Origin: Ylistrum balloti
Taxonomy: Eukaryota
Reading direction: 5' to 3'
Assembly (NCBI RefSeq): GCF_031769215.1
Contig: NW_026782194.1
Location: forward strand, 248,001-312,000
Length of the DNA stretch: 64,000 bases
Shown here: positions 2,161 through 54,000 of the stretch, piece after piece
Position numbering within the stretch: position 1 is the first letter of the stretch
How the letters are laid out: each line of letters begins with the position of its first letter
Position numbers and translations under genes: made by a program
The notes under the pieces: model-generated
The model's database searches: none
The model's input: the letters and a program-made list of their open reading frames with translations, nothing else
What the model was told of the DNA's origin: nothing

Positions 2161-3477
2161 AGAGTCGTGTCACGGTCAAATTTTTGATAAGGAAGAGAAA
2201 ATCTGGAAACCTCACACAACCATAACATATGACATGGTAGCTTGTTAGAGAAAACGAATGGGACCAAGATTACACAATGTGTATATCGGTAATGTGAATG
2301 AGGACTTAAACACTACTACCAATTATCTATAAGATCCTGTACAGCAGAAGCATGTCTTATTTTTTGTTACAGCTTTAGCAGTAATTAACTTCTAAAGTTT
2401 TTACACAGTTATCTCCCCTATCTGTACATCCAAATGGTCTGTTATCTAATAGTAAATACTGATGATACAGCTGTTTATACACATCACTCATGAACACACC
2501 ATTCATTACTAAGTAGCTTATCAAATTACATTACAAGACATATCTAGAGTAAAGTTTTATTTACTGAAACGATAAATATCTGGATAGAAATACAAGATAT
2601 GATGAAATAATTTCCTGTAAAAATCACTGACTATGTATATACATGTATTATGATAAAATGAATATGTTGTGAGTGAATTATAATAAATTGGATGTTAAGT
2701 AATCCTAAATCCTTTCAGATGTTCTTTTTTTTTTATGACAATGAAAATTCAAAGACTTCAGCAGAAAATATGTGTTTTTTTCTATGGTAATGAAGGACAA
2801 ATGGTTGCCAGCAAATCCAAAGTGAGGACTGAAGGAATTCAAGCATATCAATTTTTTTTTCAAACAAGGAAGAAATTCCCAAGGAGAACGAGAGGAGTTC
2901 AAAAGACCCATTAAACCTCCAACCCAACTTCCAGCACCTCCATGTCACAGATATATAACTAGAGACTATTGTATGATGTTTACGGTGCAGTTCTATCATA
3001 AATTGCTGTGCAAATATCATGTAGCAGTCTTTAAGTGATAATAATAACAAAATGTCATGAAGAAATACAGCGCCTCTTGTAATAGAACAAAAGGTCTACA
3101 TCACAGTATTTCGCTTAACAATCGTGGAAACATTTTCATTAACAGCAAAAATGTGACTTTTTTCCCTCCCATATCACTCGGAGGCAAGAACACAATTTTA
3201 AGCACAACATCAACAGGAACCATCTCAATATACAATTTGCCTTTAAATTATATCCAGCGTATAATTAGACTACTAAAAAGTCTACGACAGAAAGCTATCT
3301 TCAACAATATTCATCCCTTAAACAAAATATTGGCCCCCTGTTTCTTTCCCCTTTTATACAACAGTCCATTCGCACAAAGCAATAACAAGTATTTCTATCA
3401 CATTCAACTTTGGCATATACACTGAACACATTAAACCCAATCTGTAAATATACATTGATACTAGGAGCAAGAAGAAC

Positions 3478-6400
3478 TTATTTCCGTTTACTAGAATCCG
3501 TCGTGCCCAAATCTAGACTCTGCCAATCATCAACGTCATCATCATTAGCCCAAACTTCATTGTCCCAGCCAGAATTTCCATTGGTTTGTGAGGAAGGTTC
3601 ATCTTCGAGATCTAGAAGGTTTCCAACCAATGGTTCCTTCTGTTTCTTTGGGGACGAGAAGCCATCGCCCCAGTCTGCATCGTCCCAACCATCGTTGCTC
3701 TTACTGGTGGTCTTGGAAGACTTTTTACTGTGATTTTTAGGGCTAGACTTTTTACTTTTGTTTGTTTTAAAATCTGTTTCTGCGCCCCAGCTATCCCATT
3801 CATTTTCATCCTTTTTGGGTTTTGAGGATTTTGACTGAAGTGGTTTCTCATCATTCAACCATGCTTCAAACTCGTCCTCCTCAGTATTCCTGTCTGAGGA
3901 CAAACCCTGATCGTTGTAATCACTCGAGTGCATTTTTTTCTGGTTTTTCTTGCCATCTTGCCAGTCACCCTCCCAGCTATCCCATGAATCCTCATCTGAC
4001 AAAAGTCGATTTTTACTGGGATCTCTGCAATACAGAAAACTGCCATCAAACTTTGAGCTTAACAGTTGAAGAACAGTCTTAGTATGAAGTGAAACAAGAA
4101 ACCTGAGATATCAGTGCAGTATTTGCATAATAAAGTGCATCTTTAGATTTCTACTACACAATCTGCCCTTTCCATTGCAAAGAAATATCCGTGACCTTTT
4201 CATTATGTTCAAATGAATACAAATATGGAAATTGTAATATTGATTCAAAATGTCAAAACATATGACAGTGTTACATGTTTTGATGATGAATTGAAGCATA
4301 TAGACTTTTCAGGAAATGGGAAAATTAAAAATGCTGAAAAACACAACGGGCAGTAACTCTTTGAAATACTGTTAAATCAAAATGTTGTTCATGAAATCAC
4401 AGCCTCATGCCATTGTCATAATGTCTTCAAATCTCAAGAAAATGGTTGAAGAAAAAACTGTGGGAGAAGAAATCAGCAAAGGGCAATAACTTTACCAAAA
4501 ATTGTAAAATTACAATGCCATTCATGATATCAGGATTTGGTGTAATGATTTTCAAGCCCCACCAATGTTTAGTTAAACAGGTTATCACTTAGAGAGAAAA
4601 TGTCCATGCAAGATTTATATGCTCCAAAAAAAAAAAAGTCAATTGATTCTTAAAATTTATTGAATTAACCTGCCATCGAAAGAAAAACACATTTTCAAGT
4701 CAGTGTCATACAGCCTACAAAGTTTGCAATAAACTAATTGAAAACTGAGAGAAAAGATGTCCAGACAGGGTGAATATTATGAAAACATCAAAGGCAGTAA
4801 CACAATTTCAAAATCAAGGTAACTAAGCCTACCAATTTTGATACAGATAGGTTGAAAACAAGGGAGGATATCACTAACATATTTCCTGGTTCAGATGTGG
4901 TAAAACTATAGAAACACAACTGCCATGTTGCATGGAACACAGGACTTCTTAAATATTTCCACTGTTATATCATTGGGGCATTGAATTGGCTTCATAATTT
5001 CAAGATATTGTAGACACCAAGCATCACCTTGCACAGAAATGCAATGATGCAACCAGGCTGGAAGGACATATAAACAAAGAAGTTACCTAACCCATCTTTA
5101 AAACAACCATATTATATTTTTTACCAACAGTAATTAATATTTTAGAAGGAGATTACGGAGATTACTGAGATTACTATAATTAAGAAGCACAAAAAGTAAT
5201 GTACTTGTTTTCACTAATTGTTCGGTACTTCAGATCTTTTCAAACCTGGAAACAAACACCAATGACGATATATTTACCTCTGGGGTGATGCATTATCTGT
5301 GAGGAGGGAAGATTTCTCCCCTGGACTGGTGTCCACAGATGACAAAGTTGTTTTAGGTTCTCCCCAAAGAGACTGGAAATTGGTCCATCCCTTAGAACTG
5401 GCAGATGACAGCTAGAAAACAGGAAGGATGAAGAAAATTATATATGGTATACCGGCATCACAGTGCTCAGTTGTAAACAAGTCACTTTAAACACTCAGCC
5501 TGTTACAACCACTGTACTCCCTATGGCACCCAAGTGACAAAAACTTTGGAGTACCGTGTTATAACAGGCTTTGTGACTGGGGTGTTGTTGGGAGTACCGT
5601 GTTATAACAGACTTTGTGACTGGGGTGGTGTGGGGAGTACAGTGTTATAACAGACTTTGTGACTGGAGTGTTGTTGGGAGTACCGTGTTATAACAGACTT
5701 TGTGACTGGGGTGGTGTGGGGAGTACAGTGTTATAACAGACTTTGTGACTGGAGTGTTGTTGGGAGTACCGTGTTATAACAGACTTTGTGACTGGAGTGT
5801 TGTTGGGAGTACCGTGTTATAACAGACTTTGTGACTGGGGTGGTGTGGGGAGTACAGTGTTATAACAGACTTTGTGACTGGGGTGGTGTGGGGAGTACAG
5901 TGTTATAACAGACTTTGTGACTGGGGTGTTGTTGGGAGTACAGTGTTATAACAGACTTTGTGACTGGGGTGTTGTTGGGAGTACAGTGTTATAACAGACT
6001 TTGTGACTGGGGTGATGTTGGGAGTACAGTGTTATAACAGACTTTGTGACTGGGGTGTTACATACCTTTGATCATACCTATATACCTATATACACATACC
6101 TTTGATCATACCTATATACCTATGTGTACATACCTTTGATCATACCTATATACACATACCTTTGATCATACCTATATACCTATGTGTATATACCTTTGAT
6201 CATACCTATATACCTATGTATACATACCTTTGATCATACCTATATACCTATGTGTACATACCTTTGATCATACCTATATACCTATGTGTATATACCTTTG
6301 ATCATACCTATATACCTATGTGTACATACCTTTGATCATACCTATATACCTATATACACATACCTTTGATCATACCTATATACACATACCTTTGATCTTA

Positions 6401-9400
6401 CCTATATACCTATATGTACATACCTTTGATCATACCTATATACCTATATACACATACCTTTGATCATACCTATATACCTATGTGTACATACCTTTGATCA
6501 TACCTATATACACATATGATCATACCTATATACCTATGTGTATATACCTTTGATCATACCTATATACCTATGTATACATACCTTTGATCATACCTATATA
6601 CCTATGTGTACATACCTTTGATCATACCTATATACCTATGTGTATATACCTTTGATCATACCTATATACCTATGTGTACATACCTTTGATCATACCTATA
6701 TACCTATATACACATACCTTTGATCATACCTATATACACATACCTTTGATCTTACCTATATACCTATATGTACATATCTTTGATCATACCTATATACCTA
6801 TATGTACATACCTTTGATCATACCTATATACACATACCTTTGATCATACCTATATACCTATGTCTACATACCTTTGATCATACCTATATAGTTGTGTCTA
6901 CATACCTTTGATCATACCTATATACCTATATGTACATACCTTTGATCATACCTATATACCTATGTCTACATACCTTTGATCATACCTATATACCTATGTA
7001 TACATACCTTTGATCATACCTATATACACATACCTTTGATCATACCTATACACCTATGTATACATACCTTTGATCATACCTATATACCTATGTATACATA
7101 CATTTGATCATACCTATATACCTATGTATACATACATTTGATCATACCTATATACCTATGTGTACATACCTATATACCTATATGTACATACCTATATACC
7201 TATATGTACAAACATTTGATCATACCTATATACCTATATACACATACCTTTGATGCAAAGCCACTCATGGAGCTGCCGACGTCATTCAACAGATTTCCTT
7301 CTTTTACCTACAACATTAGAAAACATAATTTTACAAACGTGGCAGATTTTCCAACTAATTCTTTTTCATATTGGAAAGGGGAGAACCAATTCAAAATCAT
7401 CCATTCATTTTATTATTAAGCAAGGATATTTAATGGAGAGCTTACTTCTAATTGACCTTTCACCTTTAGGTGCTTAAGTTGTATAATAAGACAAAGTCTT
7501 TTGTTTGGGTGCACACATTAGACAAGTTGAAACATTTTTACTACTTTCAGCCACAAAAAGTACATGAGCACATTACACAGGTTTTATGGAATTTTCTTTC
7601 CATCACCAGTCTAACAAATTTCCTTTAAAGCAGATTTTGCCAAGACATTCTATCTAAAGGAAAACACAACTGATTATAATGATGTTCATGAGCAAAAATG
7701 AAAATAAAATTAAGAAAACAAAGGAATACAACATCAAGGCAGCATGCAAAAACATTTACATGTAAATTTATCCTAAAACAATTGTGAATCAAGTTAAATC
7801 AATGGGTGTTTGCCCACAAGTAGTAACAAAGGAGAGAAACCAGTATGTCTGTAAGATAGGATCTTTTGCCTTTTGTGGTCCTGTATGAGATCTGCTGATG
7901 TCACTGGATGATCCAATACAAGAATTGTTGATATAATTCTGATTAGAGAGATTGTACAGTTATATGGATTTCCTGACATCCGTCACAGTTTAATGTTGTA
8001 TAAGTGGAGTCTGTCGTAAGTTATGGTACCATGGGTTGCAGTTTGTAACCTTGGTGTTAGTTACAATAATGTTAGTATCAGTTATGCAAAGTTTGTAACA
8101 TCAGTTATACAAAGTTTGTAACTTCTGTCTTAGTTATAATACTGTTAGTATCAGTTATACAAAGTTAGTAACTTTGGTGTTAGTTATAATACTGTTAGTA
8201 TCAGTTATACAAAGTTTGTAACCTTGGTGCTAGTTATAATACTGGTAGTATCAGTTATGCAAAGTTTGTAACATCAGTTATACAAAGTTTGTAACTGCTG
8301 TCTTAGTTATAATACTGTTAGTTTCAGTTATACAAAGTTTGTAACCTTGGTGTTAGTTATAATACTGTTAGTATCAGTTATACAAAGTTTGTAACCTTGG
8401 TGCTAGTTATAATACTGTTAGTATCAGTTATACAAAGTTAGTAACCTTGGTGTTAGTTATAATACTGGTAGTATCAGTTATACAAAGTTAGTAACCTTGG
8501 TGTCAGTTATAATTTGTTAAGTCAAACAGCCTCCTGGTGTATACCTTGTCCTTTGTGGGTTTGATGACAGAGTCGTTGACTGATTGTCCGAGTTCCTTGG
8601 TTTTGGCTGCAGTCAGGGTAGCTACATGTGAGGCCTAGGAGTGCACAACAACAATCATAGTAACACAAAATACACAACAAAATTTAACTAAATATTTAAA
8701 TAACACAACAAAATTTAACAAAATATTCAAATAAAAAAACCATAAGTGTAACTAGGGATATCACAGGAATCTTGGTGGCCATCATTGTAGGAGTGGTCAT
8801 TTAATTAAAGCTGGATGTTTTCCTTTCTTTCCTTCTTCTTTCTTTCCTCTTCTCATTTTCCATTATATGTGGACATTTATATAGTAACATCAACAAGAAC
8901 AGTACTTCCCCACAAATAACAATAACAAACTAAATTATCAAAATGATTTTTTAACAATTTATCCCAAAATTGACTCTTTTTTTTTTTTTTAACTTTTTAG
9001 GCATGTAAAAAATCCAAGATGGCCATCTATCAGCCATTTTGTTTCTCTGATCAATCTCAACATGGACAATACACCAATATTGGGAACAAGGTCATGAAAT
9101 TTGAGACTAATTTATTCAGTTCTTCTCCAGAAAAAGCCATCAAAAGTATACTTTAAGGACAGAGACCCTGTGTACCATTGACAATTTAGTGTGATTTGAT
9201 AAAGCTTTGGCAAAAGAAGAATCACACAAATGCTCATGCACTTGAAAGAAAGAAAATTGCTTAATAAGCAATATCATTTATAGACTTAATTGTACCTTGT
9301 TCATGCTAAAAAGCTGCATTTGCCAACATAAAGCACTTCACTAACTTTAAAATATGTGCAAACGCTCTGTTTATAGCTGAGGGGAAATATCAAGGTTAAC

Positions 9401-48000: not shown

Positions 48001-51000
48001 GATACCTCACTTGAGTCTCTGTTTCAGGTTCCAGGGTAAAGATTACCATTTATTGATATCTATAGAAAACCTCCAACCATTTCATAGCTATTGTGTTGAC
48101 ACTTCAAGCATGGAAGTGTTGGCACTCATGTACCACCATCATTTTCTGATTAATTTGATTGTCACTAAAAGTATCAGATGACTAGGTTGATGACCATTAG
48201 GTGTTTAATTATAACCTGATATTTTGAGAATTAGGGATGGCAACTTCAATACTTGTCAGGTTGACTTCATTGTTTGCAAGTACTTCCAATTATTTGACAT
48301 ACATGTAACTAACGCATTAAGAATTTTTTCTAGAAATTTTATGTATTTCAGATCTAAGGCATTTAAAGGAGGCAAAACTTGGACATCTTGTCAAATTTTT
48401 ATAATTCTTGTTTACGATAAAAATTCCATAACGTTGGAAAAGAGTGACAGGCATATTTTGTGTAAATAGTGATACCATTGTTTTGTAGTGCTGACTCTCC
48501 CGTGTTGTGGTTGAGAATTGACCCAGACATGCACCTACTTAGTCAGGTAACCTGGGAACAGCCAGACTTTATGTGGCAGTACCAGTTGAAGTTTGAGCGA
48601 GATGTGGTCGCACAGAAAGAGGTAAGGAAAGTATCTGTCTTGTCAGAATTCATTTTAGAAGTCGAGTACAGATGTCTCTCACATAAAATGTCTCCTGGAA
48701 GTAAAGCCGGGGCTGTTATGTTAAACCTTAAACATTGGTGCAAGAAAGACTTCCAAGTGTTTTTGTTGCTTTTAAGCACAAGTCTGGTGTATTTCTTTAT
48801 CATTGCTTTAAAAAATGCTGATACTTAAAGAACGTAAAAATGATGCATTAATTCCTTACATTACTTAACAGGAAACTGAAAAACAACAATCTGGATTGGA
48901 AAAAAATAAAAATAAATAAATAAAAAAAAAGATAAAAAAAAAACCTGGATTGAGTTAATGGATTTTATTTTGTATATCTTAGGCTATTGTTGCATTAGAG
49001 AACTACCCAACAGCTGCTACTAGGAAAGCTTTGACAGACACATTAGAGAATGAGCACTGTTTCTACCGGGTTCGCATGGAGGCCTGTCTCTGTCTGTCAA
49101 AGGTGAGTATTCCACACTGGAGAATGAGCACTATTTCTTCTGTGTTCGCAAGGAAGCCTGTCTCTGTCAGATAACATGTGATAATGGAATTAATGTCATT
49201 TGCTACCATTTGAAATGTTAAATAAATGTATAAAGATTGTTTGTCGTCTGAAGTTTTTTGTTATTACAGGTAGCCAATTCAATGGTCAATAACTGGGTGG
49301 GACCTCCTGCGATGATCACTATCTTCCGTAAACTGTTCGGGTCACATTCCTGTCCGAACATCGTCAGACAAAACAACTTTTCCAAGCTACAGCATTACTA
49401 TCTTCTAAAGGTAGGAACTCAATCTGTATTGTAATTAATATTAAATTGAATAATAAAATACTGGCAGCTTATATTAATTTTCTAGTTGTGGCAATTTTCA
49501 AAATTTAGAAAAAAAAGGGCCCAACAATTTTTTGTGATATCTGAAACACCTTGCTCTAAATTCTGTATTTATGTATTTTGTGATATTTTTACCATTGTAG
49601 ACCATCCCTTTTGCCATGGCCCACCTCCGGAGTATCCAAGCCATCTGTCCCCAGGAAGTTCTCCGCTTTATTCTGGAACTTTTCAAATACAACGATAATA
49701 GCAAAAACAAAGTATGTTATTGTTTTTTTTTGACCAGCTTTTCACCAGTCCTTAATATGTATACCTGAACAGGCTTGTACATCAGTCCCTCATAATTAAT
49801 CATTATGTACTGATATTTCAGTCTATTAATATAGTGTAATTGTACAGACTCATAAGTCACTCTAGTAAACATAAACACATATATTATACACAGTATACTC
49901 AGTTAGGAGTGTTTTATTTATATACAATGTTAATTTCCAGGTATACTGTATCGATTCTTTACAATTAAGCATGTCATGATGTCAACAGAAATGTATAGGT
50001 ATATTAATGTGTTGTAGTACTCTGACAACTACTACAGAGCTGCTCTGTTGGATTCTCTAGCAGCCACTCTGACTCCTGCTGTCACTATCATCACTGGTCT
50101 TGGGTAAGTTGTCAATCATTTTACACTAGCTTAAATTCAAATATAGACTGAATGTCAGAGAAAGAGGCTCAATTCTTGGACACTGTGCTGTAGAAAGCCA
50201 ATTTTCTTATGGAAAACATGAAACATCCACTGTAATGATGTTACTAATCCATTTCATTCGCAACAGGTTCGGGATAAGTTGATTTTTATTCGTGTGAAAT
50301 GTCTACCGGTTTCGCCCGAACAGTGGGCTTCTTCAGGACAGAGTATAAACAATTTTTTACCCCTAAGGTACTGAAAATCGGGAGAAAGTTTTCATTGTTA
50401 TTTATGACGTCTTACAATAGACATCACATGATCATAAAGTAACGGTTAAAATTCTATGATATTCCTTCACGGTTACTGTTATCATTTTTAGTTTAATTTT
50501 CGGAATTAACAGTGAAAAAAATTTTTAAAGTTCATATGCGATAGTTTCTAATATGGTGGTACAAGATATAAACATATGTATATTGCATAGTCATTCTTCT
50601 GATCTTAATAGACTAGTCATCATAGACTCGTTCATCTAGGCACACCGTCGACGTAGACTCCGACTGGTAACCTAACCTCCGGTAATCGACCGTAGACGAT
50701 ATGTTAGAGTTTGACGCTGTATCATCACTATCAGATAATTCCAAGTCTTTCTTTAGTTCTTCTAGTGCTAAATCCAAAACCGGTCGATAGTTTTTATGGG
50801 CTGGTCCGACTGTGTCGTATGGGCCCTCCGCTGGTTTCAATCTGAATTTCACTTGTTGTAGTTGTTTCTTTGTCAGCACCTCGAACGGGCTCTTATCCTC
50901 CGGTTTAGTTGCGTTCATTCTGGTGTCATCCTGGAAAATTTCAGGTTCCACTTGGTATCCTGGGTGTTTTTTCTTTAAATGTTCTTTGTACGCCCCTTTC

Positions 51001-54000
51001 CTTCCATAAGTATGTTTACAAATTTTGCATCGGTGCCATGTTTTCAGCATGGTGTGTACTTTATCTGCATGTCTTCTCAGGTTTTCTAAACTTGAGTACG
51101 TTTTGCCGCATTTTATGCACAGTATTCTCGGCTTTACTTGCGTCTTTTGATCTGTTGCCTGTTTCCTTGGTGTTTGTTTCGTACGCGCCATCACGATATA
51201 ATATTAAGACCTTCTGGCTGCGTTGTTCTCAATATCCTGATCCAACTCTCTTCAATTCTCAGGCGACGGTTGTTATCACTGACGTTCGATAACAGACCGG
51301 TGACTATGACGTCACTGGTACTGTGACCTGGCGACGTGAAATGTCCCGCCACCGGCTTGTCTGGGTGTTTGTTAATGATGCTATACAGATGATTGCGGAT
51401 GCGTGTATTTATCGTCGTCGATGTTTGTCCGACATACTGCATACCGCATTTTTTACATGATATTAGGTACACCGCGTTCACACTTTGGCATGTGATCTGT
51501 CCCTGTACTTTATATTCTGATCTGGTAGTGTGACTTGTGAAGTGGATAGTGGGTTTCATATGCGCACATATTCTGCAGTTTTTTCCGCACGGACAACTGC
51601 CCGGTCGGATAGAGTCACAACCGTCGCCTGAGAATTGAAGAGAGTTGGATCAGGATATTGAGAACAATGCAGTCAGAAGGTCTTAATATTATATCGTGAT
51701 GGCGCGTACGAAACAAACACCAAGGAAACAGGCAACAGATCAAAAGACGCAAGTAAAGCCGAGAATACCGTGCATAAAATGCGGCAAAACGTACTCAAGT
51801 TTAGGAAACCTGAGAAGACATGCAGATAAAGTACACACCATGCTGAAAACATGGCACCGATGCAAAATTTGTAAACATACTTATGGAAGGAAAGGGGCGT
51901 ACAAAGAACATTTAAAGAAAAAACACCCAGGATACCAAGTGGAGCCTGAAATTTTCCAGGATAACACCAGAATGAAACGCAACTAAACCGGAGGATAAGC
52001 GCCCGTTCGAGGTGCTGACAAAGAAACAACTACAACAAGTGAAATTCAGATTGAAACCAGCGGAGGGCCCATACGACACAGTCGGACCAGCCCATAAAAA
52101 CTATCGACCGGTTTTGGATTTAGCACTAGAAGAACTAAAGAAAGACTTGGAATTATCTGATAGTGATGATACAGCGTCAAACTCTAACATATCGTCTACG
52201 GTCGATTACCGGAGGTTAGGTTACCAGTCGGAGTCTACGTCGACGGTGTGCCTAGATGAATGAGTCTATGATGACTAGTCTATTAAGATCAGAAGAATGA
52301 CTATGCAATATACATATGTTTATATCTTGTACCACCATATTAGAAACTATCGCATATGAACTTTAAAAATTTTTTTCACTGTTAATTCCGAAAATTAAAC
52401 TAAAAATGATAACAGTAACCGTGAAGGAATATCATAGAATTTTAACCGTTACTTTATGATCATGTGATGTCTATTGTAAGACGTCATAAATAACAATGAA
52501 AACTTTCTCCCGATTTTCAGTACCTTAGGGGTAAAAAATTGTTTATACTCTGTCCTGAAGAAGCCCACTGTTCGGGCGAAACCGGTAGACATTTCACACG
52601 AATAAAAATCAACTTATCCCGAACCTGTTGCGATTGACTTATATACTTTGGTTTCCCCTATTCCTTCAATCGCCCTGCATACCGGGTGGTATCCGGGCAA
52701 GGGATATAAAGAACCAACGGAACCTTAATAAAAGTCAAGGCGTTGGCTCTACCCCTGGATTTACGTAATCCATTTCATTGTTATGTCAGGATGCTAGCAC
52801 ACCCTACATCAGTACACTAATGATATTAAGAGAACATGCTATTTATTAGCCCACCATCCTCGAATGGTTTGCTGTATAAATCACCTTTTGTCTGTAGCTA
52901 TGGTTTGGCTTTCCTTAAAAAATTGTTGTCATTGATATTTCTTCAGAAGTGCTGGATGTATCATTTACAAATTTCATATGTAAGTTTCTCTTGGTCCCTA
53001 ATTGTTTGTTTTCCTATTTTAGTCTGCCATGTCACACGAGGTGGGCTGATCAGATAAGTTATTGTGAGTGGTCAGTGGTCCATAAGCAGTTCTTGTTATC
53101 GCTACTCCCTAGAAACATTCCTTGGGATTTTTTTCTGAACTGTCAGTATATATGTCCCTTGGTCCCTAATTAGTCGTGATTTTCTGATATATCTGATTTC
53201 AAGATGGCCACCAGTAGTCATATTGGGATTTAGCAGGAAAGTTTGATATTTTTCCTTTTCCAAAACTATCAAAGGTGATTAGTGTCCATCTTTTAATTGC
53301 TGTGTTGATGTTGAACTTATTTTTCAGACGAGCATATCTAGTGTTGATGATGGTTCTACTGTTTGCTTTGTTCCCATCTGGAAATGTGACATTACTTACT
53401 GATATTTACATGACAGATGTCGTCCATGAAGACATTTTGCAGGAAAACCTGTAGGTCTTTTCCTCCTTGTACCATTTGAGGGGTCTCTATAGAAATCTTT
53501 CCTTTGTTCATATTTTACCCTAGTTTCATAAAATTTGAGTTTGACTTAGGATTCTTTCGACATGTTGGTATTGTGTGTGTTATCATGAAATACTGGAGTA
53601 ATATTTATGTAGATTTCTGTTTGTGTCTTATTGTCCTCGGTCAGTGTTCAGAGTAAATAATTAGACAGATGACAAAAGAAGAGAAGAGATCAACTTAACA
53701 TAGACTTGATACAGAACTTATGCTGGTGGATGCCCAGATCTCTCTGGGATCTTTTGTGTGTAATAAGGAAAGAATTTCAATGGACAATCTGTCATAGAAA
53801 TTTTACCATGCGTTAATTCTACAGTGAGGGTCCATCGATGGACAGCCTGACAACAGAGACGAAGCAGATCCTCGAGGAGATCACACGCTGCCTTAACCTC
53901 GACAAATTACTGCCATGTTACCATCACACTGTGACTGTCAGGTGAGGCAATTTACTTTCACACTGTGACTGTTAGGCAAGACAAATTACCATCACATCGA

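Follow-up and report, generated by a model that had tools for sequence, protein, structure and literature searches.

A head-to-head Penelope-like element insertion in Ylistrum balloti, probably from a single retrotransposition event, and a conserved second reading frame in its family

Introduction

Penelope-like elements (PLEs) are the least understood class of eukaryotic retroelements. Here we analyse a 64,000-nucleotide stretch of the Ylistrum balloti genome (RefSeq assembly GCF_031769215.1, contig NW_026782194.1, positions 248,001 to 312,000; hereafter the window), which carries a PLE insertion composed of two 5'-truncated copies of the element's 3' region joined head-to-head. The 3' module of this family comprises the stop codon of the reverse transcriptase-endonuclease reading frame (ORF1) overlapping the start of a second open reading frame (ORF2) as TGATG, followed by ORF2, an untranslated region (UTR), a hammerhead-type motif, AATAAA, a conserved motif and a tail of ~130 nt. 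The architecture of the insert is known biology; the conserved ORF2 downstream of the endonuclease is a variant that does not appear in the literature searched.

The closest described systems are the Neptune and Nematis PLEs (Arkhipova 2006; Craig et al. 2021, PMC8557442), which share with this element a C-terminal GIY-YIG endonuclease with CCHH, a CX2-5CxxC linker, GxKF and DKG motifs, frequent 5' truncation, direct or inverted pseudo-long terminal repeats (pseudo-LTRs), a 3'-proximal hammerhead and a tail on one side of the insert. In these elements the tail measures 30-40 bp and is often restricted to a single end, and the upstream pseudo-LTR can be flanked by a 5'-truncated copy in inverted orientation (PMC8557442). 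They differ from the present element in that canonical EN+ (endonuclease-containing) PLEs are described with a single ORF, whereas here a conserved ORF2 of ~190 aa follows directly on the endonuclease stop; in the length of the tail, which is ~130 nt here; and in the target, which here is AT-rich and not a (TA)n microsatellite.

A mechanistic precedent comes from the Poseidon element PAc of Anolis carolinensis, whose purified protein cleaves and extends both target strands and starts reverse transcription from two internal RNA sites, the tail being the stretch between these two sites (PMC11167929). PAc and our element have in common two classes of 3' terminus with the tail between them and an AT-rich target, with ATT at the nick sites; the use of both strands would explain the inverted arms. 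PAc, however, belongs to another clade and lacks the linker zinc finger, and it carries its hammerhead and start sites within the beginning of the ORF, where the pseudo-LTR meets it, whereas in the present element these features are placed between ORF2 and the 5' UTR of the following unit.

Twin priming of L1, reportedly described by Ostertag and Kazazian in 2001, is said to leave, inside a single target duplication, an inverted 5' part that is joined through a microhomologous inner junction to a direct 3' part. Its two parts derive from one RNA and do not overlap, in contrast to the 1-kb overlap found here and to two outer ends that are both element 3' regions.

Two further systems bear on the 3' module. 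The minimal hammerhead ribozymes (min-HHRs) of metazoan PLEs, thought to act as dimers (PMC4209133), share with our motif a type-I topology, the CUGANGA box, one additional base inserted between 9 and 10.1, pairing of G10.1 with C11.1 and a palindromic helix III (ACCGGU or ACUAGU) so short that it is stable only between two copies; nothing essential sets them apart, except that helix I is short here (4-5 bp). Chlamys-2_cBra (PMC8557442) likewise encodes an extra small zinc-binding protein besides the reverse transcriptase-endonuclease and has a 3' hammerhead, but it is a green-lineage element with an N-terminal endonuclease whose additional ORF is upstream, gag-like and of CCHC type, whereas the element studied here is metazoan, with a C-terminal endonuclease and a downstream C2H2 ORF.

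Results

Two truncated copies within one target duplication

The insert spans 50259-52779 (2521 bp, with one target copy counted in). A 5'-truncated minus-strand PLE copy runs from 51616 to 50259 and is joined head-to-head with a 5'-truncated plus-strand copy at 51617-52765. In agreement with the inverted arms, core and extension described in an initial annotation of the window, a repeat finder returned inverted repeats at 50254-50915/51976-52637 (662 nt) and 50914-51273/51617-51976 (360 nt, 98%), corresponding to arms of ~1015 nt on the minus strand (50259-51273) and ~1016 nt on the plus strand (51617-52632), with a 343-nt unique core between them. The plus arm is extended by 133 nt that the minus arm lacks, and the insert itself contains no reverse transcriptase. 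Its features are as follows, where q denotes the window coordinate minus 51273.

50245-50258 (no strand): left copy of the target-site duplication, TAATCCATTTCATT; exact 14-nt direct repeat, present as a single copy in empty-site contigs
50259-51273 (minus): left, inverted arm, with the last ~26 endonuclease codons, ORF2, a 272-nt UTR, the hammerhead and AATAAA, without tail; outer end at q1359, inside the conserved motif
50297-50343 (minus): predicted minimal PLE-type hammerhead of the left arm; covariance model R1, 66.9 bits (own sequence in the model)
50613-51191 (minus): ORF2, intact, 192 aa from ATG; N-terminus basic and similar to histone H3, then two C2H2 fingers, then a C-terminal half that is conserved and mostly disordered
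51191-51616 (minus): end of ORF1, 5'-truncated, with CX3CxxC linker and GIY-YIG/CCHH endonuclease; TGA stop at 51193-51191
51274-51616 (minus): unique 343-nt core, in the minus-strand copy only
51616-51617 (no strand): head-to-head junction of the two 5'-truncated copies; 2-nt microhomology AC
51617-52632 (plus): right, direct arm, same module as the left arm; ORF2 broken into pieces at 51699-51986 and 52012-52278
52548-52594 (plus): predicted minimal PLE-type hammerhead of the right arm; predicted cut after UA, 52587; features per PMC4209133
52601-52606 (plus): AATAAA, 14 nt past the predicted cut site
52630-52674 (plus): conserved motif, TGTTGCGATTGA, with possible pairing between its GCGAUUGA and UCAAUCGC (52667-52674); the family's short termini are located within or just beyond it
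52633-52765 (plus): PLE tail, 133 nt, at the direct-arm end only; second AATAAA at 52727-52732
52766-52779 (no strand): right copy of the target-site duplication; direct repeat, seen in the empty site

The 14-bp target duplication proposed in the initial annotation is borne out by contigs of two public sequencing runs (X1, organism code A, and X5, organism code B) that carry the empty site: they pass exactly from 50244 to 52766, skipping 2521 nt, and contain the 14 nt once, fitting both sides. The flanks of these contigs differ from the window by ~1%, and the insert is either polymorphic in the species or restricted to the assembled lineage. Compared with five other copies of the family, the eight substitutions between the arms are divided equally, four being private to each arm, as expected after a single event; in addition, the right arm has one extra A in the A-run at 51975-51977, which shifts the ORF2 frame. 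The left ORF2 carries four private substitutions, including a Pro to Leu change in the conserved IPC motif, and these substitutions together with the right-arm frameshift fit neutral decay. Given an arm divergence of 0.8% and the existence of an empty allele, the insert is young, as originally suggested, but not brand new.

The inner junction, 51616|51617, joins positions 3531 and 3874 of the reference copy on C85 described below, and no other copy with this junction was found in the genome searched. No second target duplication occurs there. The outer left junction has 1 nt of microhomology (A).

Two termini shared by independent inserts

The asymmetry of the window insert recurs at eight other loci. 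In nine of nine independent tail-out inserts, from family A and near relatives, the end of the inverted arm falls at q1359-1382 and that of the direct arm at q1489-1492; the tail of 110-133 nt is confined to the direct arm, and the inner junctions differ among the nine. The direct copies on C310 and C58 also end in the short zone. This zone, ~45 nt past the hammerhead cut site, coincides with the motif TGTTGCGATTGA, which is conserved in ten diverged families; the two segments GCGAUUGA and UCAAUCGC, ~30 nt apart within it, may form a paired element, as suggested by one compensatory change in family E. The 133-nt extension is the known PLE tail, in a longer version than those described.

The initial view that both ends of the insert are element 3' ends therefore holds in that both are 3' regions, but the termini are different, the left one falling ~133 nt short of the right. 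It had also been proposed that the pseudo-LTR is unusually long here through inclusion of a complete second gene. This is not upheld, as the length of the arms merely marks the point at which two copies were joined, and the overlap in other tail-out inserts of the same or sister families ranges from ~50 to 800 nt.

Tail-out inserts are also found in other families. One at C111:488500-496500 (locus L049, ~4577-5881) has an inverted arm without ORF2, in which the endonuclease C-terminus is followed by a hammerhead after ~110 nt. Another, of family J, reaches the contig end at C977:344500-350213 (L052, ~3027-5659) and has a layout like that of the window; it is nearly symmetrical, with arms of ~1.3 kb that run from ORF1 codons ~712/730 to the end and include ORF2.

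A minimal hammerhead with covariation support

The motif at 52548-52594, mirrored at 50343-50297, consists of helix I (UGUC/GACA), CUGAAGA, a bulged A, helix II (GCCC/GGGC), GAA, the palindrome ACCGGU and an A at position 17, and displays all four hallmarks of PLE min-HHRs (PMC4209133). It begins ~272 nt after ORF2. A genome-wide count of the exact core pattern gave 72 occurrences, among which loop 2 takes more than 25 different sequences, vs 0 occurrences of a reversed control. For covariation we aligned 17 distinct instances, namely 13 diverged family variants and four decayed family A copies. The proposed structure pairs 88.7% of cells, compared with 23-38% for slid partners, and the alignment contains 19 two-sided changes, a value matched by 0 of 500 shuffles; among the compensatory changes, CG is replaced by AU or by UA in helix II, and CCGG becomes CUAG in the palindrome. 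When the window was scanned with a model derived from these sequences, exactly the two arm copies matched, by construction and hence not as independent evidence. Covariation thus supports a minimal, dimer-type PLE ribozyme, for which self-cleavage is predicted.

Many mini-copies of ~100-210 nt contain the hammerhead and tail only (q1279-1490), for example at C200:530722-531026, C511:234210-234513, C42:652907-653224 and C370:19441-19752 (loci L022-L024 and others). They often form almost perfect palindromes whose centre lies at the hammerhead's 5' edge; one (C370) is a tandem. These mini-copies look like retrozyme-like, non-autonomous pseudo-LTR derivatives (compare bioRxiv 10.64898/2026.07.22.740005).

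A parent element of the Neptune/Nematis type

Searching the genome itself with the core, arm and extension yielded long copies of the element. On C85 (locus L032, minus strand) an uninterrupted frame of 934 codons matches Pfam RVT_1 (E 1.7e-7) and GIY-YIG, within the order inverted piece, direct upstream pseudo-LTR, ~58-nt spacer, 934-codon frame, 196-codon ORF2 frame, UTR, hammerhead and tail. A second long copy on C310 is frameshifted and has a direct pseudo-LTR, and a third on C58 is 5'-truncated. The PLE identity given in the initial annotation is confirmed by the GIY-YIG domain with CCHH and by this parent on C85, which links a reverse transcriptase to the same ORF2/hammerhead module; absence of such a parent would have spoken against the proposal.

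ORF1 of C85 contains GKKF, ADKGG (DKG), YIDD, the linker CGKNCRIC and CCHH with two cysteines between GIY and YIG. The CX3CxxC linker is also present in the window core. The minus-strand frame that runs through the core and the inner part of the arm matches Pfam GIY-YIG (E 2.7e-6) and has the CCHH signature (PMC8557442), with two histidines downstream of the cysteine motif. Pseudo-LTRs are direct in C85 and C310, with an inverted piece in C85 and tail-out inserts in the window, C282, C63 and others. From the GxKF, DKG and YIDD motifs, the linker and CCHH, the element is assigned to the C-terminal endonuclease-containing (EN+) PLEs of Neptune/Nematis type by the criteria of Craig et al. 2021. 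Membership of other clades was considered and ruled out: Penelope/Poseidon elements are without the linker finger, Hydra elements have no CCHH and Naiad/Chlamys elements carry an N-terminal endonuclease.

The upstream pseudo-LTR of the long copies C85 and C310 starts inside ORF2, at q929 and q795, respectively. The expectation that the 3' cassette would also lie upstream of the reverse transcriptase in a tandem element holds in part, as the ORF2 end, UTR, hammerhead and tail are found there but a complete ORF2 is not.

A conserved gene downstream of the endonuclease

In the left arm the intact ORF2 (50613-51191, minus strand) shares one base of its ATG with the ORF1 stop (TGATG). Between family A and its sister B, which are 72% identical at the DNA level, the proportion of synonymous differences (pS) in ORF2 is 0.78, a saturated value, and that of nonsynonymous differences (pN) is 0.15, whereas the other two frames contain 10-13 stops and show pN > pS. 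ORF2, initially noted as an H3/zinc-finger frame, is therefore a real gene under strong purifying selection.

The gene is widespread. At least 149 matches to ORF2 were found in the genome by tblastn, many of them with open frames of 180-220 codons. Families A, B, D, E, G, I and J have ORF2 between the end of the endonuclease and a hammerhead ~200-270 nt downstream; in family F it adjoins a hammerhead, with no ORF1 match at that place. The ORF2 sequences of the other families are 41-69% identical to that of family A. In every family checked, the ORF2 ATG and ORF1 stop overlap (TGATG or TAATG) or are separated by a gap of 2 or 4 nt, an arrangement that fits translation of ORF2 by termination-reinitiation after ORF1, which is probably how it is expressed.

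The ~190-aa product begins with a basic tail of consensus M-x-x-T-K-x-T-P-R-K and continues with two C2H2 fingers; a series of short invariant motifs that ends in CLDE occupies its C-terminal half. Families A and B match histone H3 at eight of its first ten positions, with ARTKQT exact in these two; the others retain just x-x-T-K-x-T-P-R-K, with V, P or G as the first residue. In an AlphaFold model (mean pLDDT 63.7) the fingers alone are confident. A word-index protein search with ORF2 returned nothing at E<=0.001, and Protein Atlas gave generic C2H2 clusters only. An exhaustive search with the C-terminal half retrieved eight relatives, among them RefSeq proteins of Ylistrum balloti. Relatives from ENA and Logan assemblies (P0001-P0003, P0006 and P0009) share no more than 70% identity with any sequence of this genome, which indicates that the ORF2 family is not limited to this species.

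RefSeq lists ORF2 copies (C371:292620-293168, C111:493587-494120 and C281; P0004, P0005 and P0010, of which P0004 is 100% identical to C371) as 'MDS1 and EVI1 complex locus protein EVI1-A-like', 'histone-lysine N-methyltransferase PRDM16-like' and 'uncharacterized protein'. The host-gene names were probably given to transposon ORFs on account of their C2H2 fingers, a practical annotation error worth flagging.

Discussion

Proposed mechanism of insertion

Based on the above data, we propose that the insert arose in one retrotransposition event of a Neptune/Nematis-type PLE, which placed two 5'-truncated copies of its 3' region head-to-head in an AT-rich site with a 14-bp duplication; we assign this reading a probability of roughly 85%. 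The endonuclease would nick the two target strands 14 bp apart in AT-rich DNA, and each 3'-OH would then prime reverse transcription of the element RNA. The bottom-strand 3'-OH would do so at the distal site (q1492), where the junction T is common to the target, giving the tailed arm, and the top-strand 3'-OH at the proximal site in the conserved motif (q1359), with one shared A, giving the tailless arm. Both cDNAs would stop early, at ORF1 codon ~790 and 26 codons before the ORF1 stop, and their 3' ends would be joined at the AC microhomology observed at 51616|51617. As the arms overlap by 1 kb, the model calls for two RNA molecules or for a template switch onto the first cDNA. Lacking both a reverse transcriptase and a promoter-proximal 5' end, the insert was dead on arrival and cannot move by itself.

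Several alternative explanations were considered. Two independent insertions of the same family, with the 5' end of the first or its immediate vicinity as the target of the second, would be conceivable for a family that is active, prefers AT-rich DNA and belongs to a genome with PLE clusters (e.g., C281:511-592 kb). They are very unlikely, however, given that a single 14-bp duplication surrounds the whole unit, that the empty allele is exactly 2521 nt shorter, that the inner junction has no duplication of its own and that the one-sided tail recurs in nine of nine inserts, which independent events would not lead one to expect. A simple 5'-truncated insertion that was later palindromised by DNA repair or replication template switching would account for the 2-nt inner microhomology, typical of end joining or fork switching, but a later duplication would not recreate the target duplication at the new outer end and gives no reason for repeated stops in the same 35-nt zone (q1348-1382) at independent loci; we regard this route as highly improbable. 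We attach equally little weight to an assembly artefact, in which a fold-back or chimeric long read would have turned one 5'-truncated copy into an inverted duplication. Inverted PLE structures are known to trouble assemblies (PMC8557442) and the filled allele is present in none of the searched run contigs, yet the arms differ at eight sites and one indel, the artefact would need to end exactly at the second copy of the target duplication, and the missing-tail asymmetry is repeated at eight other loci. Two related scenarios were also dismissed: arms from two different master copies, as every arm difference is private to one arm, and the copying of a pre-formed inverted unit, as the inner junction occurs at no other locus.

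A different question is what the short terminus represents within the same event. It could be an RNA 3' end polyadenylated at the proximal AATAAA, with two RNA isoforms giving rise to one arm each. The positions lend themselves to this idea: the proximal AATAAA lies 5-15 nt past the cut site in eight of ten diverged families, the short ends fall 14-48 nt beyond it and the long ends lie 33 nt past the second AATAAA. However, no A-tract was found at any short or long end, and PLE reverse transcription starts internally, with no need for an RNA 3' end (PMC11167929). We consider polyadenylated isoforms unlikely on balance, though not negligible, and favour two internal start sites on the element RNA in a single event.

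Several points weigh against the single-event, two-strand model as formulated here. The two-strand priming scheme is borrowed from work on a lizard Poseidon element in vitro, the short termini could mark RNA 3' ends at the conserved proximal AATAAA as just described, and, in the assembled individual, the assembly is our sole record of the inverted duplication. The tail exceeds the published 30-40 bp by a factor of 3-4 and, when folded as RNA, gave no energy-based structure signal (z -0.33). The clade placement follows from motifs, not from a tree, and Neptune and Nematis are inseparable by the linker motif alone. As to the ribozyme, helix I has only 4 bp and an Rfam scan of 49500-53500 returned no family at E<=1. 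We read the latter as a model mismatch, because min-HHRs are without helix III; the structure was therefore judged by covariation, which sustains the hammerhead of the initial annotation despite the blank in Rfam.

The locus and its sister copies form a natural record of the two-start-site, two-strand insertion model, so far derived from one in vitro study: this record includes precise ends, a proven empty site, a tail on one arm only and a conserved motif at the proximal start zone.

A possible role for ORF2

A second ORF after the endonuclease is not described for canonical EN+ PLEs in the literature searched, where they are single-ORF elements; accessory ORFs are reported upstream only and in other clades (PMC8557442). 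We take ORF2 to encode an accessory protein of this PLE lineage, and the fingers and basic H3-like tail suggest nucleic-acid or chromatin binding. A more far-reaching and rather improbable idea, which we put forward tentatively from the sequences, is that a molluscan PLE lineage acquired a second gene, coupled to the reverse transcriptase-endonuclease by an overlapping or near-abutting stop/start, whose H3-like tail (TKxTPRK) and two fingers engage host chromatin readers or writers. If so, an H3-mimicking ORF2 product could steer integration or blunt H3K4/H3K9-based silencing, and it would be the first retrotransposon-encoded histone-tail mimic as well as the first accessory protein of canonical EN+ PLEs. 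A functional H3-like tail would provide a testable link between a retrotransposon and chromatin reading.

Other repeats and a PLE cluster

Three further features were observed. In the region C281:511000-592000, several diverged PLE families together contribute more than 20 ORF2 matches within ~80 kb, which makes it a dense PLE cluster or graveyard. The copy on C58 (L033, C58:161000-170999; 1-2500 and 6270-7200) sits inside a long tandem repeat, open in several frames, with a periodic ...ITRLRTYLSPDYVP... translation, that is, a satellite. Just past the insert, at 52968-53005 of the window, contig depth reaches 15-20x that of the flanks in three runs, with many loose ends, and this segment is probably the edge of another repeat family.

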